Made by a program: the position numbers and the translations under genes. From assembly GCF_000315625.1 (NCBI RefSeq), contig NW_005434450.1, forward strand, positions 28,891-67,276: a stretch of DNA of 38,386 bases. The letters are read 5' to 3'. Under the pieces are notes generated by a model, which searched no databases, had not been told where the DNA came from, and saw only the letters and a program-made list of their open reading frames with translations. Below are positions 11,910-35,226 of the stretch, one piece after another. This DNA is from Guillardia theta CCMP2712. Its lineage: Eukaryota > Protista > Cryptophyta. The first letter of the stretch is position 1. Every line of letters starts with the position of its first letter.

Positions 11910-12072
11910 TGAGAGGGAGTGGGAGGGAGGGAGGGAGGGAGGAGAGGAGAGGAGAGGAGAGGAGAGGAGAGAGAGGAGGAGAGGAGAGGAGAGGAGAGGA
12001 GAGGAGAGGAGAGAGAGAGTGCGGGAGGGAGAGGAGAGGAGAGTGGGAGGAAAGGGAGGAAAGAGAGGAGAG
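11910..12072. repeat. (GAGAG)n/(GGGA)n purine microsatellite
   Basis: Directly visible. Confidence 0.92.
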
Positions 12073-12360
12073 GTCTGCGGGAGGGAGTTAGTGGGGAAGG
12101 AAATTAGAGGCATGATGAGCGAAAAAATGCACCGAGAGGGCACGCAGGAGAAACTTCGCGAGGAAGGAGCTGAATTCGATGAAAAGACCGATATCTGAAG
12201 AAGTTAGAACCAGCGATTGAGATGAAAGCTTGGCTACCATCCTCTAGAGTTGGGTGTGAAAAACCAACAAGAAAGATTTCGTTTTAAGTTTGGCTCCCCG
12301 ATTCTTGTGATGGTTTCCTCAGTAACTTGGCCTGACATGTGTCCACAGCAGAACCGAAGC

Positions 12361-14179
12361 ATGTACGTCTTCAAGATTAATCTTAATCATTCGCTCAAGC
12401 GGATCGTTGTGGATGAGGCGTTCACTTTCCCATCCCTGTGAGCATTTTTTGTGATCTCCTCCCAATTTGTTGATGTCTGGACAGTGTCTCGTTGATCAGG
12501 GAGCGCTTCGAATTGAACTCGGATGTCGCTCTGAAGCTGAAATACAAGGACCCAGAGGGTGACATTGTCACTGTAACCAGCAAAGCTGAGGTCTTGGAAG
12601 CGTTGAGCCTCCTCGACAAGGAGTCAAACCCTATCTTGAAGCTGTTCGTGGACATGGACAACAACTCAAGTGCCGGGGTTGTAGAGGAGCCGCAACCAGA
12701 CCTTCCTGTTCGATCGGAGGATCAACCTTGCATGAGAGAGTCGATAGCGTCTGAGGACTCTATTGTCATGGTGGATGGTGAAAATGACAACAGCTCTCCC
12801 AAGAATGACGAAAACGAAGAGGAGGTCCCGGCGGACGCGGATGAGGACGAAGTGTTGAAGGAGGTCATGAAAGCATCAGCTGAAGAATATGCCCGTCAAC
12901 AGGCGGCTGAGGCAGCCCGCAAGGCGGCCGAGGAAGAGGAGGCAGCCCGCAAGGCGGCCGAGGAGGAGGAGGCAGCCCGCCGCATTGCGGCCGAGGAAGA
13001 GGAGGCAGCCCGCAAGGCGGCCGAGGAGGAGGAGGCAGCCCGCAAGGCGGCCGAGGAAGAGGAGGCAGCCCGCAAGGCGGCCGAGGAGGAGGAGGCAGCC
13101 CGCAAGGCGGCTCAGGAGGAGGAGGCAGCCCGCCGCAAGGCGGCTCAGGAGGAGGAGGCAGCCCGCAAGGCAGCTCAGGAGGAGGAGGCATTCCGCCGCA
13201 AGGCGGCTCAGGAGGAGGAGGCAGCCCGCAAGGCAGCTCAGGAGGAGGAGGCAGCCCGCCGCAAGGCGGCTCAGGAGGAGGAGGCAGCCGCCCGTAAGGC
13301 GGCCGAGGAGGCAGCCGCCCGTAAGGCCGCCGAGGATGCTGCAAGAGAAATAGCAGTGTTTGAAAAGACCATGGTCATGTCAAGTGAAGAGCAGAAGGTG
13401 AGAGCAAAGCGAGATATCCATGATTGTCTCGCTCATCACTTTTGTAGATCGAGGAACGCATCATGGCCGAGATTGCTTTTGCAGCGGCGGAGGAGGATGC
13501 TCTCATGCGAGCAAAAAGTTTGATGAAGGCTGGGTGCTCTGTCGACCAGCTCAAGTCGATCTACTCTACTGGCATTCTCTCTCAGATTGGACTCGTTGGA
13601 GATGACTCGGTCGAGCATGGCTTCTCGCGTGGGCCCGTTGTCAACTGGGAATCCACAAAAGCTGTTGCAGAGCAGGATGAAAGCGAACGATTCCCCTCGC
13701 AAGAGCAGCAGGCGCTTGTGGACGAGGTCGGCAACCTTGCAGCTCGCCTGACAGCCTTCTACATGGAGCACAACCAAGCTCATCTCGATCGCGCCATCAG
13801 TGTCGCTCGTCAGTTCGTTGGTCGTGAGGACGATCTCAACGTGGCTCTTGTCAGGAAATACGGATGCGACTTGACTTCGCGAACAGCTGCTCGAGACATG
13901 TCAAGAAACACGCAGCTCCCTGTCGCTGAGGTTGCGATGAACAGCTCCAACGAGCCCAGAGCACCTGTTGTCGCTTCAGCTCCTGTGGAGGAAGACTTTG
14001 CCCCTGCCTCGCCCTCGGCTCCCTCTGCCCCCTCTCCTGCTCCTGCCACTGTCTCTGCGGACAGTGCGCTGGCTGTGCTGCTGGGAATGGGATTTTCAGA
14101 CATGGAGAAGAATCGATCGTTGCTGCAAGCGTGCGGGGGAGACCTGCAGGCTGTGATTGCTCAGCTACTTGACGAGTAA
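12361..14179 (+). CDS. PB1 - UIM - charged helix repeats - UBA protein (p62/SQSTM1- or NBR1-like ubiquitin adaptor)
   Basis: Exons 12361-12437, 12485-13397 and 13448-14179 are in phase. PB1: MYVFKINLNHSLKRI...LKYKDPEGDIVTVTSKAEVLEAL...ILKLFV (basic Lys plus OPCA DxEGD). UIM-like EDEVLKEVMKASAEEY. C-terminal UBA LAVLLGMGFSDMEKNRSLLQACGGDLQAVIAQLL. Confidence 0.88.
12905..13335 (+). repeat. Coding minisatellite of 30/33-bp units encoding EEEEAARKAA / QEEEAARRKAA
   Basis: About 13-14 tandem units such as gaggaggaggaggcagcccgcaaggcggcc. Confidence 0.95.
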
Positions 14180-14331: not shown

Positions 14332-17300
14332 CTACTGCAGGGCTCGCCTGAGCTTGATGCTCCTGCAAATGCCAGCGAAGAGAGAGAACGTGTGTGACTT
14401 CTGCAGCAGCTGTCGCTGCGACGAGAAGCTCGACACTTTCGACTGCAAGAGGTGCTGGAGCTTGGATGAGTCAGCCCAGCAGCTAAGAAAGAAGCGAAGA
14501 AACTGCCTCTTCCCGTCCTCCCAATGTCTCTCTACACTTTCCATTCGCCGCGATCGCACGTCATCCGATCCATACCTAAGCACGTGAAAAACTCCTCTCA
14601 AAGTTCTTATCTTCCTGCGCTCCCCTAGCCGCCCCACTGCTGTCGCCCCTACCGTCCGCCTGGCTCGGACAGCCCTCCACCGCTCGATCGCGCCCCATGC
14701 CGTGCTCTTGTCTCTTGATGCTTTCATCGTCGCGTACCTCGCCCGCAGCACCGCCATGCGTCGAGCGAGCTGTGTCCAAGCAAGAAAAGCCCCGGCCTGA
14801 GAGCTGAGCGTCGAGCTCCTTGTCACGAGCCTGGAGCTCTGCTTCATGGTCCTCGACATGCTGAGGCCCTCCCTCCATGCCGCCATCGCTTTCTCCATCT
14901 GCTCCACTGCCCTTGACCTCACCGCCCTCGCTTGTATGCCCCGAGATCGTCGTCTCAGACCACTCGACACCCTCCAGTGGCACAAGACAGCCCGCTGAGT
15001 ATCGCTGCGATACGAGGCCACGGCCTTCAGCAGACGAGCCCGGCGAGATCTCCTTGCAGCCACCACGCTTGTCAGCACCCCAAAGTACACCCGGACGTCT
15101 CGTCGCACGACTCGAGTCTTGATCGAGTTAGCCTTGGCAAGCACCCACCGCGTCCAGGCTGTCAAGTCCGACCACGCCTGCAAGCCTCGACTTGTGACTC
15201 GCCTCTCCTCCATCCGTCGCGCCTTAGCATCGCTCGCCTGCTCTACCCTGAGCGTCGCCATGTCTGATACCGCAGATTGGACATACGCAGACAGCTCGTC
15301 AATCACCCGCCTGAGCAGCCGTTGCGACCTTGTCCGGTCTAGCCTCTGCATGAGTCGCCAGAGCTCTCGAGCCGCTTGTGTGTACGAGACCCAGCGGTGG
15401 AAGCGGGTGTAGAGCTGCATGGAGAGCGATCTCTGTACAGTGTGCAGCAGACAAGCCTTGAGCCGTCGTGCCTCCCACACTGCCTCCCGGTACCCTACAA
15501 ACGCCCCACGCTGGATCCGGTACCTGCCCTGTATTGAAGCGCCTGCGTGTAGCCGCAGCCTTGTGTCTTGGTCGAGCCTCTTAGACTTGGAGTCCTGAGC
15601 CAGCTCGGCCCATGCGACAAACAGGTCCTCGACATGCCTCTGCGTTACCACCAGCCAGATGGTGCGGCGGATCTGCTGCTCCCTCTTGCGCATACGGCGG
15701 CATGCGGCCACCGATGCTGCGAAACGGATCAAGGCTTCTCCTGCTCGTCGTCGCCTCAGCACCTCTACACAATGTGTCCTCCGTTGCCTCGTGCGGGAGC
15801 TATGACGCGATGCCCATGCCCACTCCGCTAGTAAAGGCTTGAGACTGCGTGCTCGCTGCCCCCGAGCCATGCATTCTCCGGACAGCACTCTCCATGTATA
15901 GATGGTAGCTCTTCCATGCCAGACGATGATGGCTTGCTTGAGCAGGTATGCTTCTCTATCGCGAGGACTCTGCAGCAAGTAGTACGCTTTGCCCAAGATC
16001 AGATGCTTCTGGGGCAGCGCACAGACGTGCAGGTGGTTGACTTGACGCAAGAGATACTGGGATTTCATCACCATCAACTCATCGCCAGGACGAGCTGCAA
16101 GCTTGACGTCCTCGCAGATTTGACTCGAGATCATACGCTGTAAGGCAAAGGAGCTCGTCTGTCGACTGATGTCCAACTCTGTCTTCACGTACTGGTTTAC
16201 ATTTCGCATTTGCCAAAGCGATACTAGATACTTGCTCAAGCACAGGCGGTCCCTGTTGGCGCGAAAGGACGTCGCTTTCGCTTGCAGTACAAGCTTGGCA
16301 TTGACCCGCCCCGCCCAGCTCACGAAGACAAGCCTGCTTGCAGCCCTGCGGGTTCGGTCCACGAGCTTGTTCACGCCATACTGCAGACGTCTCACACTCA
16401 GCAGGTACAAATCCAGCGCCTCAAATGCAGAAACCATGAGCTCCTTCCTCCTGCGCTCCCCTAGCCGCCCCACTGCTGTCGCCCCTACCGTCCGCCTGGC
16501 TCGGACAGCCCTCCACCGCTCGATCGCGCCCCATGCCGTGCTCTTGTCTCTTGATGCTTTCATCGTCGCGTACCTCGCCCGCAGCACCGCCATGCGTCGA
16601 GCGAGCTGTGTCCAAGCAAGAAAAGCCCCGGCCTGAGAGCTGAGCGTCGAGCTCCTTGTCACGAGCCTGGAGCTCTGCTTCATGGTCCTCGACATGCTGA
16701 GGCCCTCCCTCCATGCCGCCATCGCTTTCTCCATCTGCTCCACTGCCCTTGACCTCACCGCCCTCGCTTGTATGCCCCGAGATCGTCGTCTCAGACCACT
16801 CGACACCCTCCAGTGGCACAAGACAGCCCGCTGAGTATCGCTGCGATACGAGGCCACGGCCTTCAGCAGACGAGCCCGGCGAGATCTCCTTGCAGCCACC
16901 ACGCTTGTCAGCACCCCAAAGTACACCCGGACGTCTCGTCGCACGACTCGAGTCTTGATCGAGTTAGCCTTGGCAAGCACCCACCGCGTCCAGGCTGTCA
17001 AGTCCGACCACGCCTGCAAGCCTCGACTTGTGACTCGCTTCTCCTCCATCCGTCGCGCCTTAGCATCGCTCGCCTGCTCTACCCTGAGCGTCGCCATGTC
17101 TGATACCGCAGATTGGACATACGCAGACAGCTCGTCAATCACCCGCCTGAGCAGCCGTTGCGACCTTGTCCGGTCTAGCCTCTGCATGAGTCGCCAGAGC
17201 TCTCGAGCCGCTTGTGTGTACGAGACCCAGCGGTGGAAGCGGGTGTAGAGCTGCATGGAGAGCGATCTCTGTACAGTGTGCAGCAGACAAGCCTTGAGCC

Positions 17301-20300
17301 GTCGTGCCTCCCACACTGCCTCCCGGTACCCTACAAACGCCCCGCGCTGGATCCGGTACCTGCCCTGTATTGAAGCGCCTGCGTGTAGCCGCAGCCTTGT
17401 GTCTTGGTCGAGCCTCTTAGACTTGGAGTCCTGAGCCAGCTCGGCCCATGCGACAAACAGGTCCTCGACATGCCTCTGCGTTACCACCAGCCAGATGGTG
17501 CGGCGGATCTGCTGCTCCCTCTTGCGCATACGGCGGCATGCGGCCACCGATGCTGCGAAACGGATCAAGGCTTCTCCTGCTCGTCGTCGCCTCAGCACCT
17601 CTACACAATGTGTCCTCCGTTGCCTCGTGCGGGAGCTATGACGCGATGCCCATGCCCACTCCGCTAGTAAAGGCTTGAGCTGCATTTTCATCACCATCAA
17701 CTCATCGCCAGGACGAGCTGCAAGCTTGACGTCCTTGCAGATCTGACTCGAGATCATACGCTGTAAGGCAAAGGAGCTCGTCTGTCGACTGATGTCCAAC
17801 TCTGTCTTCACGTACTGGTTTACATTTCTCGTGAACCAAAAGGCAATCAGGTGCCTGCTCAAGCACAGGCGGTCCCTGTTAGCGCGAAAGGAGGTCGCTT
17901 TCGCTTGCAGTACAAGCTTGGCATTGACCCGCCCCGCCCAGCTCACGAAGACAAGCCTGCTTGCAGCCCTGCGGGTTCGGTCCACGAGCTTGTTCACGCC
18001 ATACTGCAGACGTCTCACACTCAGCAGGTACAAATCCAGCGCCTCAAATGCAGAAACCATGAGCTCCTTCCTCCTGCGCTCCCCTAGCCGCCCCACTGCT
18101 GTCGCCCCTACCGTCCGCCTGGCTCGGACAGCCCTCCACCGCTCGATCGCGCCCCATGCCGTGCTCTTGTCTCTTGATGCTTTCATCGTCGCGTACCTCG
18201 CCCGCAGCACCGCCATGCGTCGAGCGAGCTGTGTCCAAGCAAGAAAAGCCCCGGCCTGAGAGCTGAGCGTCGAGCTCCTTGTCACGAGCCTGGAGCTCTG
18301 CTTCATGGTCCTCGACATGCTGAGGCCCTCCCTCCATGCCGCCATCGCTTTCTCCATCTGCTCCACTGCCCTTGACCTCACCGCCCTCGCTTGTATGCCC
18401 CGAGATCGTCGTCTCAGACCACTCGACACCCTCCAGTGGCACAAGACAGCCCGCTGAGTATCGCTGCGATACGAGGCCACGGCCTTCAGCAGACGAGCCC
18501 GGCGAGATCTCCTTGCAGCCACCACGCTTGTCAGCACCCCAAAGTACACCCGGACGTCTCGTCGCACGACTCGAGTCTTGATCGAGTTAGCCTTGGCAAG
18601 CACCCACCGCGTCCAGGCTGTCAAGTCCGACCACGCCTGCAAGCCTCGACTTGTGACTCGCTTCTCCTCCATCCGTCGCGCCTTAGCATCGCTCGCCTGC
18701 TCTACCCTGAGCGTCGCCATGTCTGATACCGCAGATTGGACATACGCAGACAGCTCGTCAATCACCCGCCTGAGCAGCCGTTGCGACCTTGTCCGGTCTA
18801 GCCTCTGCATGAGTCGCCAGAGCTCTCGAGCCGCTTGTGTGTACGAGACCCAGCGGTGGAAGCGGGTGTAGAGCTGCATGGAGAGCGATCTCTGTACAGT
18901 GTGCAGCAGACAAGCCTTGAGCCGTCGTGCCTCCCACACTGCCTCCCGGTACCCTACAAACGCCCCACGCTGGATCCGGTACCTGCCCTGTATTGAAGCG
19001 CCTGCGTGTAGCCGCAGCCTTGTGTCTTGGTCGAGCCTCTTAGACTTGGAGTCCTGAGCCAGCTCGGCCCATGCGACAAACAGGTCCTCGACATGCCTCT
19101 GCGTTACCACCAGCCAGATGGTGCGGCGGATCTGCTGCTCCCTCTTGCGCATACGGCGGCATGCGGCCACCGATGCTGCGAAACGGATCAAGGCTTCTCC
19201 TGCTCGTCGTCGCCTCAGCACCTCTACACAATGTGTCCTCCGTTGCCTCGTGCGGGAGCTATGACGCGATGCCCATGCCCACTCCGCTAGTAAAGGCTTG
19301 AGACTGCGTGCTCGCTGCCCCCGAGCCATGCATTCTCCGGACAGCACTCTCCATGTATAGATGGTAGCTCTTCCATGCCAGACGATGATGGCTTGCTTGA
19401 GCAGGTATGCTTCTCTATCGCGAGGACTCTGCAGCAAGTAGTACGCTTTGCCCAAGATCAGATGCTTCTGGGGCAGCGCACAGACGTGCAGGTGGTTGAC
19501 TTGACGCAAGAGATACTGGGATTTCATCACCATCAACTCATCGCCAGGACGAGCTGCAAGCTTGACGTCCTCGCAGATTTGACTCGAGATCATACGCTGT
19601 AAGGCAAAGGAGCTCGTCTGTCGACTGATGTCCAACTCTGTCTTCACGTACTGGTTTACATTTCTCGTGAACCAAAAGGCAATCAGGTGCCTGCTCAAGC
19701 ACAGGCGGTCCCTGTTAGCGCGAAAGGACGTCGCTTTCGCTTGCAGTACAAGCTTGGCATTGACCCGCCCCGCCCAGCTCACGAAGACAAGCCTGCTTGC
19801 AGCCCTGCGGGTTCGGTCCACGAGCTTGTTCACGCCATACTGCAGACGTCTCACACTCAGCAGGTACAAATCCAGCGCCTCAAACGCAGAAACCATGAGC
19901 TCCTTCCTCCTGCGCTCCCCTAGCCGCCCCACTGCTGTCGCCCCTACCGTCCGCCTGGCTCGGACAGCCCTCCACCGCTCGATCGCGCCCCATGCCGTGC
20001 TCTTGTCTCTTGATGCTTTCATCGTCGCGTACCTCGCCCGCAGCACCGCCATGCGTCGAGCGAGCTGTGTCCAAGCAAGAAAAGCCCCGGCCTGAGAGCT
20101 GAGCGTCGAGCTCCTTGTCACGAGCCTGGAGCTCTGCTTCATGGTCCTCGACATGCTGAGGCCCTCCCTCCATGCCGCCANNNNNNNNNNNNNNNNNNNN
20201 NNNNNNNNNNNNNNNNNNNNNNNNNNNNNNNNNNNNNNNNNNNNNNNNNNNNNNNNNNNNNNNNNNNNNNNNNNNNNNNNGTCTCAGACCACTCGACACC

Positions 20301-23300
20301 CTCCAGTGCACAAGACAGCCCGCTGAGTATCGCTGCGATACGAGGCCACGGCCTTCAGCAGACGAGCCCGGCGAGATCTCCTTGCAGCCACCACGCTTGT
20401 CAGCACCCCAAAGTACACCCGGACGTCTCGTCGCACGACTCGAGTCTTGATCGAGTTAGCCTTGGCAAGCACCCACCGCGTCCAGGCTGTCAAGTCCGAC
20501 CACGCCTGCAAGCCCCGACTTGTGACTCGCCTCTCCTCCATCCGTCGCGCCTTAGCATCGCTCGCCTGCTCTACCCTGAGCGTCGCCATGTCTGATACCG
20601 CAGATTGGACATACGCAGACAGCTCGTCAATCACCCGCCTGAGCAGCCGTTGCGACCTTGTCCGGTCTAGCCTCTGCATGAGTCGCCAGAGCTCTCGAGC
20701 CGCTTGTGTGTACGAGACCCAGCGGTGGAAGCGGGTGTAGAGCTGCATGGAGAGCGATCTCTGTACAGTGTGCAGCAGACAAGCCTTGAGCCGTCGTGCC
20801 TCCCACACTGCCTCCCGGTACCCTACAAACGCCCCACGCTGGATCCGGTACCTGCCCTGTATTGAAGCGCCTGCGTGTAGCCGCAGCCTTGTGTCTTGGT
20901 CGAGCCTCTTAGACTTGGAGTCCTGAGCCAGCTCGGCCCATGCGACAAACAGGTCCTCGACATGCCTCTGCGTTACCACCAGCCAGATGGTGCGGCGGAT
21001 CTGCTGCTCCCTCTTGCGCATACGGCGGCATGCGGCCACCGATGCTGCGAAACGGATCAAGGCTTCTCCTGCTCGTCGTCGCCTCAGCACCTCTACACAA
21101 TGTGTCCTCCGTTGCCTCGTGCGGGAGCTATGACGCGATGCCCATGCCCACTCCGCTAGTAAAGGCTTGAGCTGCATTTTCATCACCATCAACTCATCGC
21201 CAGGACGAGCTGCAAGCTTGACGTCCTTGCAGATCTGACTCGAGATCATACGCTGTAAGGCAAAGGAGCTCGTCTGTCGACTGATGTCCAACTCTGTCTT
21301 CACGTACTGGTTTACATTTCGCATTTGCCAAAGCGATACTAGATACTTGCTCAAGCACAGGCGGTCCCTGTTAGCGCGAAAGGACGTCGCTTTCGCTTGC
21401 AGTACAAGCTTGGCATTGACCCGCCCCGCCCAGCTCACGAAGACAAGCCTGCTTGCAGCCCTGCGGGTTCGGTCCACGAGCTTGTTCACGCCATACTGCA
21501 GACGTCTCACACTCAGCAGGTACAAATCCAGCGCCTCAAACGCAGAAACCATGAGCTCCTTCCTCCTGCGCTCCCCTAGCCGCCCCACTGCTGTCGCCCC
21601 TACCGTCCGCCTGGCTCGGACAGCCCTCCACCGCTCGATCGCGCCCCATGCCGTGCTCTTGTCTCTTGATGCTTTCATCGTCGCGTACCTCGCCCGCAGC
21701 ACCGCCATGCGTCGAGCGAGCTGTGTCCAAGCAAGAAAAGCCCCGGCCTGAGAGCTGAGCGTCGAGCTCCTTGTCACGAGCCTGGAGCTCTGCTTCATGG
21801 TCCTCGACATGCTGAGGCCCTCCCTCCATGCCGCCATCGCTTTCTCCATCTGCTCCACTGCCCTTGACCTCACCGCCCTCGCTTGTATGCCCCGAGATCG
21901 TCGTCTCAGACCACTCGACACCCTCCAGTGGCACAAGACAGCCCGCTGAGTATCGCTGCGATACGAGGCCACGCGCCTTCACGCAGACGAGCCCGGCGAG
22001 ATCTCCTTGCAGCCACCACGCTTGTCAGCACCCCAAAGTACACCCGGACGTCTCGTCGCACGACTCGAGTCTTGATCGAGTTAGCCTTGGCAAGCACCCA
22101 CCGCGTCCAGGCTGTCAAGTCCGACCACGCCTGCAAGCCCCGACTTGTGACTCGCCTCTCCTCCATCCGTCGCGCCTTAGCATCGCTCGCCTGCTCTACC
22201 CTGAGCGTCGCCATGTCTGATACCGCAGATTGGACATACGCAGACAGCTCGTCAATCACCCGCCTGAGCAGCCGTTGCGACCTTGTCCGGTCTAGCCTCT
22301 GCATGAGTCGCCAGAGCTCTCGAGCCGCTTGTGTGTACGAGACCCAGCGGTGGAAGCGGGTGTAGAGCTGCATGGAGAGCGATCTCTGTACAGTGTGCAG
22401 CAGACAAGCCTTGAGCCGTCGTGCCTCCCACACTGCCTCCCGGTACCCTACAAACGCCCCACGCTGGATCCGGTACCTGCCCTGTATTGAAGCGCCTGCG
22501 TGTAGCCGCAGCCTTGTGTCTTGGTCGAGCCTCTTAGACTTGGAGTCCTGAGCCAGCTCGGCCCATGCGACAAACAGGTCCTCGACATGCCTCTGCGTTA
22601 CCACCAGCCAGATGGTGCGGCGGATCTGCTGCTCCCTCTTGCGCATACGCCTGCACTCAATCGTGGTGTAGTGCATCTGTGTGAAGCAATCTTGTATTGT
22701 TCTCTGCGTTCTGTTCACGCTGATTACGGCATAGCTTTGTTGAAGTTCTTTGCTGATTTGAATGTACTGAGTGTACTTGTTGAAGAATTCTGTGATTGTA
22801 CATCGGTTCAATCGGTTGGATACTTGAATTTGAAGGTTAGACCTGTATGAACAATTTGAGTATGTGTGTCCTTGCCATGTTTTACACACACTTTGTAGCT
22901 TCCGTTTCTGGTAAGATTGAAGTCTGTAGTTTGCAAATTGTCTGGCGCACTGCATACACCCAACATGCTTTTGCCAGTTGTTGAAGGTTGAGCATATCAA
23001 ACTGAGATACATCTTGGATTCTGTTCTTTGGATGCAGTGCGTAGCCCGATCGTTCTTAGCTGATAGTTCTTGGTACCAAAATTGAAAGTAATATTTCTGC
23101 ATATTTGCAAATATCGTCTTTGACATCTTTGAAATCAGGTATTTTGAAAACTTGGATCTCTTTGTATGATTTTGGAAAATTTTCATGCACATCGACAGAT
23201 TGCGACGCGTTGCTCTTCTCCAAATGAGAGACGAAATCCTGGAAGCATGTTGAGTTTGCTTGCAGGAATGTAACCATTCGAGGAGACATTGTTTTTTAAG

Positions 23301-25210
23301 AAGATTTCTGTTTCTCGAAACTGCGGAAAAAGTGACAGCTCGAATCAAACGAGCATCATGCATCATATTTGTAAATAAGTGAAAAGCTCTGTACAACAAT
23401 TTTCCAAACCCTTTCTTCAATAGCCACAAGACCCTATCTCTTGTGCCCAAGACGTATTTCCAACTAGCCAACACTTCAATACATTTGCTTCTGTTTGTCA
23501 AGAACTTCTTGTCTACTTTCAGATCCAGGGTGTCTCCGCATGCCTTCTTGTATCGAGACTGAAGAACAATGCTCGCTTTCCGTAACAAATGAGTATTGTG
23601 TTTTGTATACGCGTACCAAAGTTCGAAATGGTGCTGTTTCATTCGAAAATAACTCTTGAGTGATCTTGTTTGGTACATTTTCGATTTCCATCTCCTTTTT
23701 CCTGCGCCTTTGAACAGATGGAAGAAATAACGTGATAGAAGGTGAGAATTTTTGCAAAGAGAGTCTTGTTTCAAAATGTTTATACTGTCTGTTGAGTTTC
23801 TTTTGAACCTCAGTGCTCGAATGTTTACCATCATTCCAGTGACCCAGAAAACTAAACATCAATGACTTGGTATATGTGTCCTCTACACGACATACCATGC
23901 CTCTTTTGGAGCTCATGGTTTGCATATACATAATCCATACTGATAGGCATTCTACCTGCCTTCGATGAATGGATTGCTCCCAAATTTGAAGAAATTTCTT
24001 GTGGTAATAATTTTGATCCGAGCAATAATGGATCCATTTTTGCATGTGAAATCGCAAACAAGTATATGTCCTGTCAACGAAAAGTTGTCCAACTTTGGCT
24101 CGCTTCAGTTTGTGAACACTCAAAGTATGTTTCCAGTCTCGGAGGTACGATAGAATGCGAAGAGATTCCCAACTTGCAATGATACGGCTCTGACGTTGAC
24201 GAAGTATCGTCACTCTTGATCTATGTGCATCAAGTATTCTGAAACATCTGCGTAATGATTTGATTCTGGATTGCATAAAAACATAGCTACATTTTTGTGA
24301 CCTTTGGCCCACAATCATCCCATGCTTGGCACTCCAAAGTGAAAAATACAAGGAATTGTAATTTTTTGATAATTGATTTGACAATTCTTTTCTTAAGTTG
24401 ACTCGCTCTTCATTGTTTGCAATATGATTCCATTGCAGGAATGAATTCACTAGAATGACCATTGCTGTCATGTCTTTCAATCTACCAGGTTGAACTTTCC
24501 ATTGACACTTTTTCAGTAAGAAATTATGGATTCTCGTGTGCAGGACCTTGTGTCTGTGCGCAATCTCGGCCCAGGAGAACAGGTAATGCTTTGCCCTCTT
24601 ACGATTTGTATGCACCAGTTTTCGATAGGACCGATGTATACATACTTGCATAAGATGTTGCGTTGCGAATTCAACCCAAAGTTTGAAATCTGAGGAGCGG
24701 TCAGCACCAAACACTAACACTTTTGATATCGCTCACATGTTCTTGTCCTGTTGCGTATTGCCCTTCGCAATGCAATACCCTCCAGGACCTGCAACATGTG
24801 AGTTCACACATACTTTTCTCTTCCCTTTGAGATGTCTGAGATCGTTGTAACCACCATAAGGATCCCCATTCAATGCTCGATCACATCCATAAGCATGCAA
24901 TTCTTTGCTCTTCAATGATTCCATCTCACATTCCTCATTCCATTCCTCCGAAACCTCTTATTTTCATTTGTTCTCTCATAATACTGATGTCAGATATCTT
25001 CATGTCGTTCTAGTCCTCAACTCTTTCTCTTGCTCGAACTGCCTCCAAGTCCCTTCCTGTGTTCCCTCCCGCGTACCCTTGCACGTTTCTGCGCACAAGT
25101 CTCGTCTATCTTTGCTAACATGTTCTCGAATTCCTTTCTTCCTGTCTCTGCATTTCATTTCCGCTCTTGTCTTACCTTCTTCATCGCTCGCTCCCAACTT
25201 CGCTCCATTT
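14332..25210 (-). CDS. Giant Sfi1-like (centrin-binding repeat) protein, >3000 aa
   Basis: ORFs 24720-23476, 23834-21906, 21972-20284 and 20154-14332 all show Arg-rich helical segments ending in (L/F)xxW about every 30-35 aa (TQRAVLCHW, MEKAMAAW, QLYTRFHRW, LICSTFNNW). They can be joined by introns at 24736-24691 and 23828-23789, a 2-nt indel near 21972-21983 and a gap at 20181-20280. The start position is approximate. Confidence 0.75.
14613..22649. repeat. Intragenic tandem array of ~4.6 near-identical units alternating 1836 and 1623 bp
   Basis: Landmark offsets: 14877->16713 = 1836, ->18336 = 1623, ->20172 = 1836. 19628->21284 = 1623+33, the excess coming from the gap. 20896->22521 = 1623+2. 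Confidence 0.97.
20181..20280. other. Assembly gap (100 N) inside the repeat array
   Basis: Run of exactly 100 N, whereas the repeat register predicts about 67 nt plus any whole number of missing units. Confidence 1.
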
Positions 25211-25229: not shown

Positions 25230-26060
25230 TATTGGACCCACAACCCCAACTTTGTCTACCCCCACCCTGATGCTTCCCGTCTTTCTACCCACCTTCTGAT
25301 ATTAAAAGTCTCCCTCCATCACTACCCCTACCCCTCTGTTGATAGCATTCCACAAACTCTACTCTGATCACGACTACGAAGGCTCAGTTCAGACCCCCAC
25401 CCTTGGTGCCTTCGGACCCCAGGCTACCCTTGCCAATGACCCCTACCTCCCCAGACCGTACAGACTTAATTTCCCTAAGGAGAGGGGGTGAACTCAGGGT
25501 ACGGTGGGCGGATCGCGAGCCTGCACTGACCTGCTGGGCCAGGGGGTGGTGAGGTAGTAGTCAACGCCATGTTACATAGTCATTGGTAAAGGTGCCCCCC
25601 TTCTGGTGGGTACAGGGGGTGGGTACTGGCGGTTACACCCCACTGTGCCCATGCTCAGGGAGGACTCCGGGACCCCTGGTCACTACCGCAAGTCACGGGG
25701 TCACTCCCCGGAACAACAGTCGAGGGGGGTGGTTGGCTCGGCCGGCGCACGGTGTGGCCTCAGTGGCCCGACCGGCTGGGGCCCCGGCCGGGTCACCGGG
25801 CCGGGTCCGATCACTCACTGTCTGAGTCCACGTATCAATCAGGTGTGCTAAGCCTCCTCCCTCCCCGAACAAGCTATAGACCCACCCCCACCCTCTCACA
25901 TGAGTATCCACCCCTATCGACTATTTTGGTTCATGTACCCTCATTAGGGACTCATATTACAATGCCAAGTACCGGTGTACTAAATACCCCACCCATATTG
26001 AAATACTGCAACATCACCCCACCCCACCCTGCGTCCCCTCGAATCTCTCGAACCCCCCCC
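25230..26060. promoter_or_regulatory. Intergenic control-like region: ACCCC tracts flanking a GGGTAC-rich stretch and a short GC island (25690-25830)
   Basis: Same word classes as the other intergenic regions. It lies between the divergent Sfi1-like and DUF1279 genes. Confidence 0.4.
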
Positions 26061-26967
26061 CCCCTCCCCTCCCTCCCTCCTCCCTCCTCCCTCCTCTCTC
26101 CTCCCTTCTCTCTAATTCCCTTCTCCCCCTTCTCCTCCTTTCTTATCCCTTCTCCTCGTCCCATGCGATCTTTGTCGTGAAATCTTTCACAAACACGCAT
26201 CTTCATTCATATCCTTCATTTCTCATGCTACATCAAACTCGCATACAATAACAACTCCCTCTTGCCCTCTCTCTTGATAAATTTCTCTTGGATATTCTCT
26301 GGCATTTATTCGTAACCAAGTAACAGTCTCAACCCTCTCTAGCTGTTTTAGCTCACGTTTGTTCGTAAAACATTCCCCCGCTTGCTATGTCTGTCTTCCT
26401 GTGCTTCCAAGAAGACAAGAGTCCTCAAAGTTTTCCTAGTTTTATTCTGCACGCCCTGGAAGTACTCTTTGAAAGCTTGAATGGAACCGGCAAGTCTTGA
26501 GCGTGAACTAAGGCTTCAGGGCTTGTTCAAGTCCTGGTTGTCCTTTTGGCTTCTACTGCTTTATTCTTCCTGTTTGTTTCGAATTATCCAAAGGCAAAGT
26601 TTCACGATATTTCATGTCATCCACTACCTTGCGCTGTGTCTGCTTGCCTGTCCCTTCCTTTCCTCGATGGTCAACGATTCATAGGACCGACGACTAGAAC
26701 ATTTGCTTGCATAGGACATTATGGCTATGCTGTATCTTGTGCAGATTCGTTCACCAGTCTTCCACTACTTGGTGTTTCATTTGCTATCTCCCAAGCCTTG
26801 CAGCTGCTCAACGTGTAGAGTATGTGCGATCTGATTTTTTTTTCCTTCTGGATCTTGTGTAGGACAGAGATGAGAGAAGAAACAATCACAGTCACTTGCG
26901 ATCACAAATCTTTTCCTCTCTCCTACCCAACAGCTCGTTCGTCTGCTTGAGCTAACCCTTGCTGCAG

Positions 26968-32324: not shown

Positions 32325-33370
<1,046 letters not shown>

Positions 33371-35088: not shown

Positions 35089-35226
35089 NNNNNNNNNNNN
35101 NNNNNNNNNNNNNNNNNNNNNNNNNNNNNNNNNNNNNNNNNNNNNNNNNNNNNNNNNNNNNNNNNNNNNNNNNNNNNNNNNNNNNNNNNNNNNNNNNNNN
35201 NNNNNNNNNNNNNNNNNNNNNNNNNN
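35089..35226. other. Assembly gap
   Basis: Run of N. Confidence 1.

Follow-up and report, generated by a model that had tools for sequence, protein, structure and literature searches.

What does a long, tryptophan-rich stretch on the minus strand of the cryptophyte alga Guillardia theta encode, and is it a gene at all? The stretch lies within a window of 38,386 nucleotides, the whole piece of DNA that was analysed (contig C224:28891-67276 of the G. theta assembly), and all positions given for this locus are window positions. Our preferred answer, to which we assign a probability of about one half, is that the locus is a genuine gene, restricted to its lineage, which encodes a long, basic and helical rod made of Sfi1-like tryptophan (W) repeats, predicted to act as a scaffold for centrin. 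The conceptual protein comprises ~3,440 residues only if the frame breaks described below are read through as errors: 680 residues in the 5' part, 280 in the partial unit U0, 541, 612, 541 and 612 in the four full units of a tandem array, and 175 in U5 and the tail together. In the direction of transcription the parts are as follows, with GC denoting guanine-plus-cytosine content and AT-rich denoting sequence rich in adenine and thymine.

25176 to 25208, minus strand: candidate first exon, ATG plus 11 codons and then GTAAG, proposed from the sequence.
23829 to 24732, minus strand: N1, the AT-rich 5' coding part (GC ~0.40) with diverged tryptophan repeats, in an open frame from 24732 to 23479.
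23690 to 23838, minus strand: change of frame from N1 to N2, due either to a 1-nt error or to a GT..AG segment of 40 nt (23828-23789).
22650 to 23788, minus strand: N2, an AT-rich coding part whose open frame continues into the array (the frame 23858-21909 crosses 22650).
21811 to 22649, minus strand: U0, a partial unit (unit columns 1000-1836) with two 1-nt insertions (21982 and 21974).
20155 to 21810, minus strand: U1, short form with a K-type patch, holding the assembly gap and a 1-nt deletion at ~20308.
20181 to 20280, no strand: assembly gap of 100 N, within U1.
18319 to 20154, minus strand: U2, long form of 1836 bp, with an R-type patch (19665-19691) and the 213-bp segment (19303-19515).
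16696 to 18318, minus strand: U3, short form of 1623 bp, with an R-type patch (17829-17855).
14860 to 16695, minus strand: U4, long form of 1836 bp, with a K-type patch (16206-16232) and the 213-bp segment (15844-16056).
14613 to 14859, minus strand: U5, a partial unit (unit columns 1-247) forming the 3' end of the array.
14332 to 14612, minus strand: unique C-terminal tail with two more W sites and the stop codon.

The protein is built on a period of ~33 residues anchored by tryptophan. In unique sequence, 11 of 26 spacings between hydrophobic-x-x-W anchors fell within 2 residues of 33, 66 or 99, where 2.4 were expected (P<0.0002), and the autocorrelation of W peaked at lag 33 in two of the three parts, N1 included. 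When the long unit was written in rows of 33 residues, the first ten rows shared one column of W, or of F or L in its place; W was present in only about two thirds of the 33-residue slots, and each unit holds 16 to 18 repeats. The residue at position -3 was hydrophobic in 27 of the 36 W contexts (75% vs. a background of 34%), with L, F and I the commonest, and in N1 this held for 10 of 11 tryptophans. The enrichment over shuffled sequences was significant both in N1 and in the units (P<0.0005), and the long unit contained 14 hydrophobic-x-x-W motifs against 6.0 expected. Beyond -3, no position stood out among the 36 W contexts. The composition was rich in W (2.5 to 3.3%) and, in the units, in arginine (17%), with 0 to 0.7% proline and an isoelectric point of 10.4 to 11.7. 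A single-sequence AlphaFold model of the long unit, of low confidence (mean pLDDT 37), was assigned as helix nearly throughout by DSSP, with several helices of 55 to 68 residues. Tetratricopeptide repeats (TPR) and their half-a-TPR (HAT) relatives, which combine a 34-residue period with W, were considered as an alternative class; the 55 to 68-residue helices of this low-confidence model and the near absence of glycine and proline disfavoured them.

The array extends from 22649 (unit column 1000) to 14613 (column 247) and comprises 8002 real nt, or ~4.6 units. Its four full units are 98.6 to 99.5% identical in pairwise comparison and measure 1623 or 1836 bp (541 or 612 codons), arranged in the gene as short-long-short-long. 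In one register, five in-register copies were spaced 1836, 1623, 1869 and 1625 bp from start to start, and in the other 1836, 1623, 1836 and 1656 bp; the excess over unit lengths in the first register was 33 in the third spacing (1836 +33), originating from the gap, and 2 in the fourth (1623 +2). The open reading frame (ORF) 14332-20154 runs for 1940 codons without a stop. A preliminary description of the locus had proposed the ~33-residue W period, the near-identical units of 612 and 541 codons, unit lengths in multiples of three and the 1940-codon stop-free stretch, and all of these were borne out. So was its suggestion that the 100-N gap could conceal additional copies: the flanks of the gap are collinear in the unit, and the downstream flank picks up 66 nt after the upstream flank ends. 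The 100 N therefore replace either just 66 nt of one unit or these 66 nt together with whole units in any number, which makes the copy number a lower bound.

The long and short forms differ by one in-frame 213-bp (71-codon) segment. This segment was considered as an intron, having GT..AG ends and being removable without a change of frame, but it codes for one of the best repeats. An exon-like GC content at third codon positions (GC3, 0.63) and the fact that the short form is not its spliced product disfavoured an intron as well. Separately, the segment could in principle be spliced from some transcripts, yielding rods of differing length. The unique tail was likewise examined as a diverged unit; it could be aligned collinearly but not significantly (z=1.7), and its DNA identity was at random level.

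Several lines of evidence bear on whether the locus encodes a protein. A stop-free unit of 612 codons at a GC content of 0.60 is very unlikely to arise by chance, and even the AT-rich 5' part (GC 0.39) contains open frames of 418 and 650 codons, the latter (23858-21909) running across the AT/GC junction into the array. Six of the eight isolated differences between units were synonymous and one was a K/R exchange; this excess of synonymous changes gave approximately P=0.006 (a binomial estimate on a small sample, taking about a quarter of sites as synonymous). Finally, the units differ in a 27-bp patch (unit columns 464-490) with 14 differences, which change eight of ten codons (seven of nine between Ser and Arg); even so, the W is retained, and positions -3 and -4 stay hydrophobic. 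Together, the open frames, the synonymous excess and the motif-keeping patch argue for a protein under selection in this frame, as the preliminary description had proposed in reading a recent expansion under selection for frame. The continuous frame over 25210-14332 that it had implied was not found, as the assembled gene contains three or four frame breaks. The two insertions in U0 (21982 and 21974), 8 nt apart, shift the frame into a stop at ~21906. A single nucleotide is deleted at ~20308 relative to all other units, 27 nt from the edge of the gap, a likely position for a read-end error. The coding frame also shifts by one base between 23838 and 23690, and there it can be restored either by removing the 40-nt GT..AG segment (23828-23789) or by a 1-nt correction.

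These three single-base indels and the further change of frame, together with the lack of any protein from the locus in the collections searched, are what would be expected of a dying or dead gene, in which a recent amplification took place inside a pseudogene and the frames are open only because the copies are young. We consider this unlikely. Young copies would account for open frames in the array, but the old AT-rich 5' part also retains its 418- and 650-codon frames at a GC content of 0.39. The predominance of synonymous differences between units (6/8) and the retention of the motif through 14 changes in 27 nt speak against decay in the array itself, and the three single-base indels are all located in places prone to consensus errors, namely within repeats and in one case 27 nt from the gap.

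The variable sites also record how the array was formed. They divide the four units in all three possible pairings: the length form and the sites linked to it group U1 with U3 and U2 with U4; the 27-bp patch with its 14 differences and column 1493 group U2 with U3 and U1 with U4; and column 270 groups U1 with U2 and U3 with U4. These sites cannot be reconciled with one tree, and the units have therefore exchanged segments. The history of the array is one of gene conversion or unequal exchange among units, not of copying of one 3459-bp super-unit. Of the long-short alternation that the preliminary description had read as such a super-unit, the alternation itself stands; clean copying of the super-unit is contradicted by the pairing of U2 with U3 and of U1 with U4 by the patch, and with it falls super-unit duplication as the route of the recent expansion.

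Since the units are longer than a Sanger-era read, and since the gap with its low-quality flank lies within the array, we also considered that copy number or order might be an artefact of assembly. Units could have been misplaced around the gap, or the four units could represent a short-long pair in two allelic versions, with the two-unit arrays of both alleles placed in tandem. The combinations of markers make such an error improbable. Patch type and length form are found in every one of their four combinations. Because these two markers are ~170 nt apart, close enough for a single read, the sequenced DNA must have contained four distinct units or more. This speaks against a plain assembly artefact. 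In addition, the junctions at both ends of the array (22649/22650 and 14612/14613) are unique, and three other G. theta loci, described below, carry the same kind of array.

The array is also set off by its base composition. The GC content is 0.39 in the 5' part vs. 0.60 in the array, and the increase, from 0.39 to 0.58 over 100 bp at 22650, coincides exactly with the start of the array. The step holds at all three codon positions, with GC3 increasing from 0.40-0.46 (N2 0.46) to 0.70 in the units, and would thus fit a mutational or conversion bias in the array and not only a demand for arginine codons. With its four unit types, its reticulate history and a GC step exactly at the array edge, the locus is a clean case of concerted evolution within a coding region.

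What kind of repeat is this? Sfi1 repeats follow the consensus A-x7-LL-x3-F/L-x2-W-K/R; the gaps measure 23 to 35 residues in yeast, the human repeats are 33 residues long, and Kilmartin's ScanProsite rules call for A-x12-[FL]-x2-W-[KRH] at least three times or for a double motif at least twice (PMC2173958). From yeast to ciliates, no Sfi1 feature except W itself is more conserved than the basic residue that follows it (PMC2173958; PMC9946354). The ~33-residue spacing found here falls within the Sfi1 range of 23 to 36. At the level of pattern (hydrophobic-x-x-W, ~33 spacing, basic, proline-poor and helical) an Sfi1-like character is partly supported, which is also as far as the Sfi1-type repeats of the preliminary description can be followed: the pattern and the analogy to other G. 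theta loci stand, whereas a Pfam Sfi1 match and a basic residue after W were not found.

A series of results weighs against an Sfi1-like centrin scaffold. The check by Sfi1 hidden Markov model suggested in the preliminary description came out negative, with no match of Pfam Sfi1 (PF08457, 22-bit cut-off) at E <=1 for any piece of the locus. Solved Sfi1-centrin chains gave no match by sequence search or by a search with the 33-column profile. Residues K, R or H directly after W occurred at background level (25% vs. 23%), and the motif [FWL]-x2-W-[KRH] was found once per part, the same as in shuffled sequences. The A-x12 rule was matched once per unit, i.e. four to five times in the whole protein, all being copies of one site; the double motif scored 0, and leucines at -7 and -8 were not enriched. 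Searches for relatives point the same way. Word searches of protein collections with the unit, the 1940-residue ORF and the 5' ORF returned no relative and no self-match; a HMMER search of 1.84 billion representatives with a 1200-residue query (both unit forms plus tail) was blank; 74 pattern matches in metagenome contigs yielded 0 confirmed cases; and the rest of the G. theta genome contained no second copy or paralogue. Since even the queries themselves were not recovered, the locus is probably covered neither by a public gene model nor by a protein derived from transcripts, and the gene appears to be unannotated, public gene sets seemingly having missed it. The broken frame as assembled (21982, 21974, 20308 and 23838-23690) and the poor AlphaFold model (mean pLDDT 37) belong on the same side. 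Searching Pfam with all pieces, an antisense 155-codon ORF and an alternative frame gave nothing above noise. In the ESM Atlas recognition was low, and the nearest named clusters were weak and mixed (Sfi1 0.78, IQ 0.77).

Other loci of the same genome provide a closer comparison. Pfam Sfi1 exceeded its cut-off in three matches on contigs C113 and C72, with weaker matches at C60 and C85. The open frames at these loci ranged from 469 to 1251 codons, and their products contained 2.4 to 4.2% W, 14 to 19% arginine and ~0.5% proline. At three of them near-identical tandem units were present:

C72:247626-251315: units of 297 bp, Pfam Sfi1 over the cut-off.
C85:100257-105111: units of 693 bp, Pfam Sfi1 match below the cut-off.
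C113:35919-37325: units of 198 bp, Pfam Sfi1 over the cut-off.

These unit lengths (198, 297 and 693 bp) are exact multiples of 33 codons. At C72 and C85, an array with a GC content of 0.68 to 0.74 and an AT-rich part made of diverged W repeats (GC 0.39 to 0.48) lie in the same open frame, and at one of the loci an assembly gap lies inside the array. The locus analysed here resembles C72 and C85 in joining a GC-rich, near-identical array to an AT-rich W-repeat part of matching composition. It differs from C72, C85 and C113 in that its units (1623 and 1836 bp) are not multiples of 99 bp, and from C113 and C72 in that it does not reach the Pfam cut-off. Features of its own are the largest units, the loss of the basic residue that follows W, and the abrupt change in GC content where the array begins; such steps may be typical of arrays driven by conversion throughout the G. 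theta genome.

Pairwise comparison by phmmer and BLASTP gave no significant similarity between this locus and the Pfam-matched G. theta loci. A position matrix derived from those loci (60 non-redundant repeats, positions W and -3 excluded) scored the 28 repeats of the present locus at z=3.7 over within-repeat permutation. When the two 33-column profiles were aligned with hhalign, all 32 columns came out in register at P=4.5e-5, compared to 2e-4 to 3e-3 for column-permuted controls. Judged by these profiles, the repeat is of the same kind as in the G. theta loci recognised by the Sfi1 model, in a more degenerate form; membership of the Sfi1 family proper does not follow.

The same comparisons bear on a further explanation, namely that the locus encodes a real repeat protein which is not a centrin scaffold. 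A basic helical W-repeat rod of this kind would be Sfi1-like only in pattern, and its partner would be something other than centrin, for example calmodulin, a different EF-hand protein, membranes or nucleic acid. The unconserved residue after W, the missing Pfam Sfi1 match and the weak, mixed Atlas clusters (Sfi1 0.78, IQ 0.77) would all be expected from such a protein. Two findings would not: a better fit of the profile than of permuted controls to the repeats of G. theta loci that reach or approach the Pfam Sfi1 cut-off, and an architecture and composition as at those loci. We regard this explanation as possible but rather unlikely.

Comparison with known scaffolds places the predicted centrin-binding rod among giant Sfi1-like proteins without making it a typical one. 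With yeast Sfi1p and human SFI1 (PF08457) it has in common W with F/L at -3, a spacing of ~33 (most human repeats have 33), a scarcity of proline and a predicted long helix (PMC2173958). It is unlike them in having no Pfam match and no K/R after W, and neither LL at -8/-7 nor A at -16 is clear. About one third of its slots are without W, it would be roughly three times longer, and it contains kilobase units at 99% identity. Giant Sfi1-like scaffolds are known from ciliates: GSBP1 and GSBP2 of Spirostomum, Sfi1-1 to Sfi1-3 of Stentor and the centrin-binding protein of Paramecium, which form the backbones of calcium-triggered centrin or spasmin networks (PMC9946354; 10.1101/2025.08.11.669701). 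The giant transcripts of Spirostomum were recovered only from total RNA without poly(A) selection (PMC9946354). The protein predicted here is like the ciliate scaffolds in being a very long, helical W-repeat protein with blocks of high internal identity (98.6 to 99.5% here). In the ciliate repeats W is followed by R/K at a period of 69 residues, whereas here the period is 33 residues and no basic residue is conserved after W. The two GSBPs, at 13,125 and 17,974 residues, are much longer, and sequence kinship with the ciliate scaffolds was not detectable. The gene adds one more example to the giant Sfi1-like kind known from ciliates.

In the model that we favour, the AT-rich 5' third of the gene would consist of old, diverged repeats, and the 3' two thirds would be a young array of ~4.6 units made by unequal exchange, with gene conversion keeping the units nearly identical. 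Each W site of the rod would bind one copy of a small, acidic EF-hand protein, with centrin the likeliest, as in Sfi1-type scaffolds. Many copies would thus be bound per rod, and the length of the array would then set the length of the rod. Centrin binding is a reasonable prediction from these features and not a result. In the literature searched, Guillardia was not linked to Sfi1 beyond the species list of a centrin phylogeny, in which G. theta is included (PMC5483020).

A survey by expansion microscopy (U-ExM) has described centrin along the gullet of cryptophytes and, in their cortex, a regular centrin network that measures ~193 by 530 nm in Rhodomonas; the authors called this a novel structural role and named no scaffold (10.1101/2024.10.18.618984). 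The set of long W-repeat rods in G. theta, whose genome is the only well-studied one among cryptophytes, supplies concrete candidates. It is conceivable, although very doubtful, that the gene and its sister loci form the scaffold of the cortical centrin mesh, with the number of units setting the length of the rod and hence the spacing of the mesh. At 0.15 nm per residue, 3,440 residues in one helix would measure ~516 nm, which is near the transverse period of ~530 nm in Rhodomonas (10.1101/2024.10.18.618984). If such a role were true, the GC-rich arrays would record ongoing GC-biased gene conversion, allowing rod length to change quickly.

The surroundings of the locus contain further repetitive sequence. 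The tail converges on a neighbouring gene on the plus strand, the end of which lies at 14179. Between 12909 and 13336 this neighbour contains ~14 copies of an imperfect 30-bp (10-codon) tandem repeat forming an acidic, alanine-rich run. Short CT-rich and AG-rich microsatellites flank the locus (window positions 26054-26113 and 12000-12073), and two more assembly gaps lie outside the feature, at 32677-32818 and 35089-35226.

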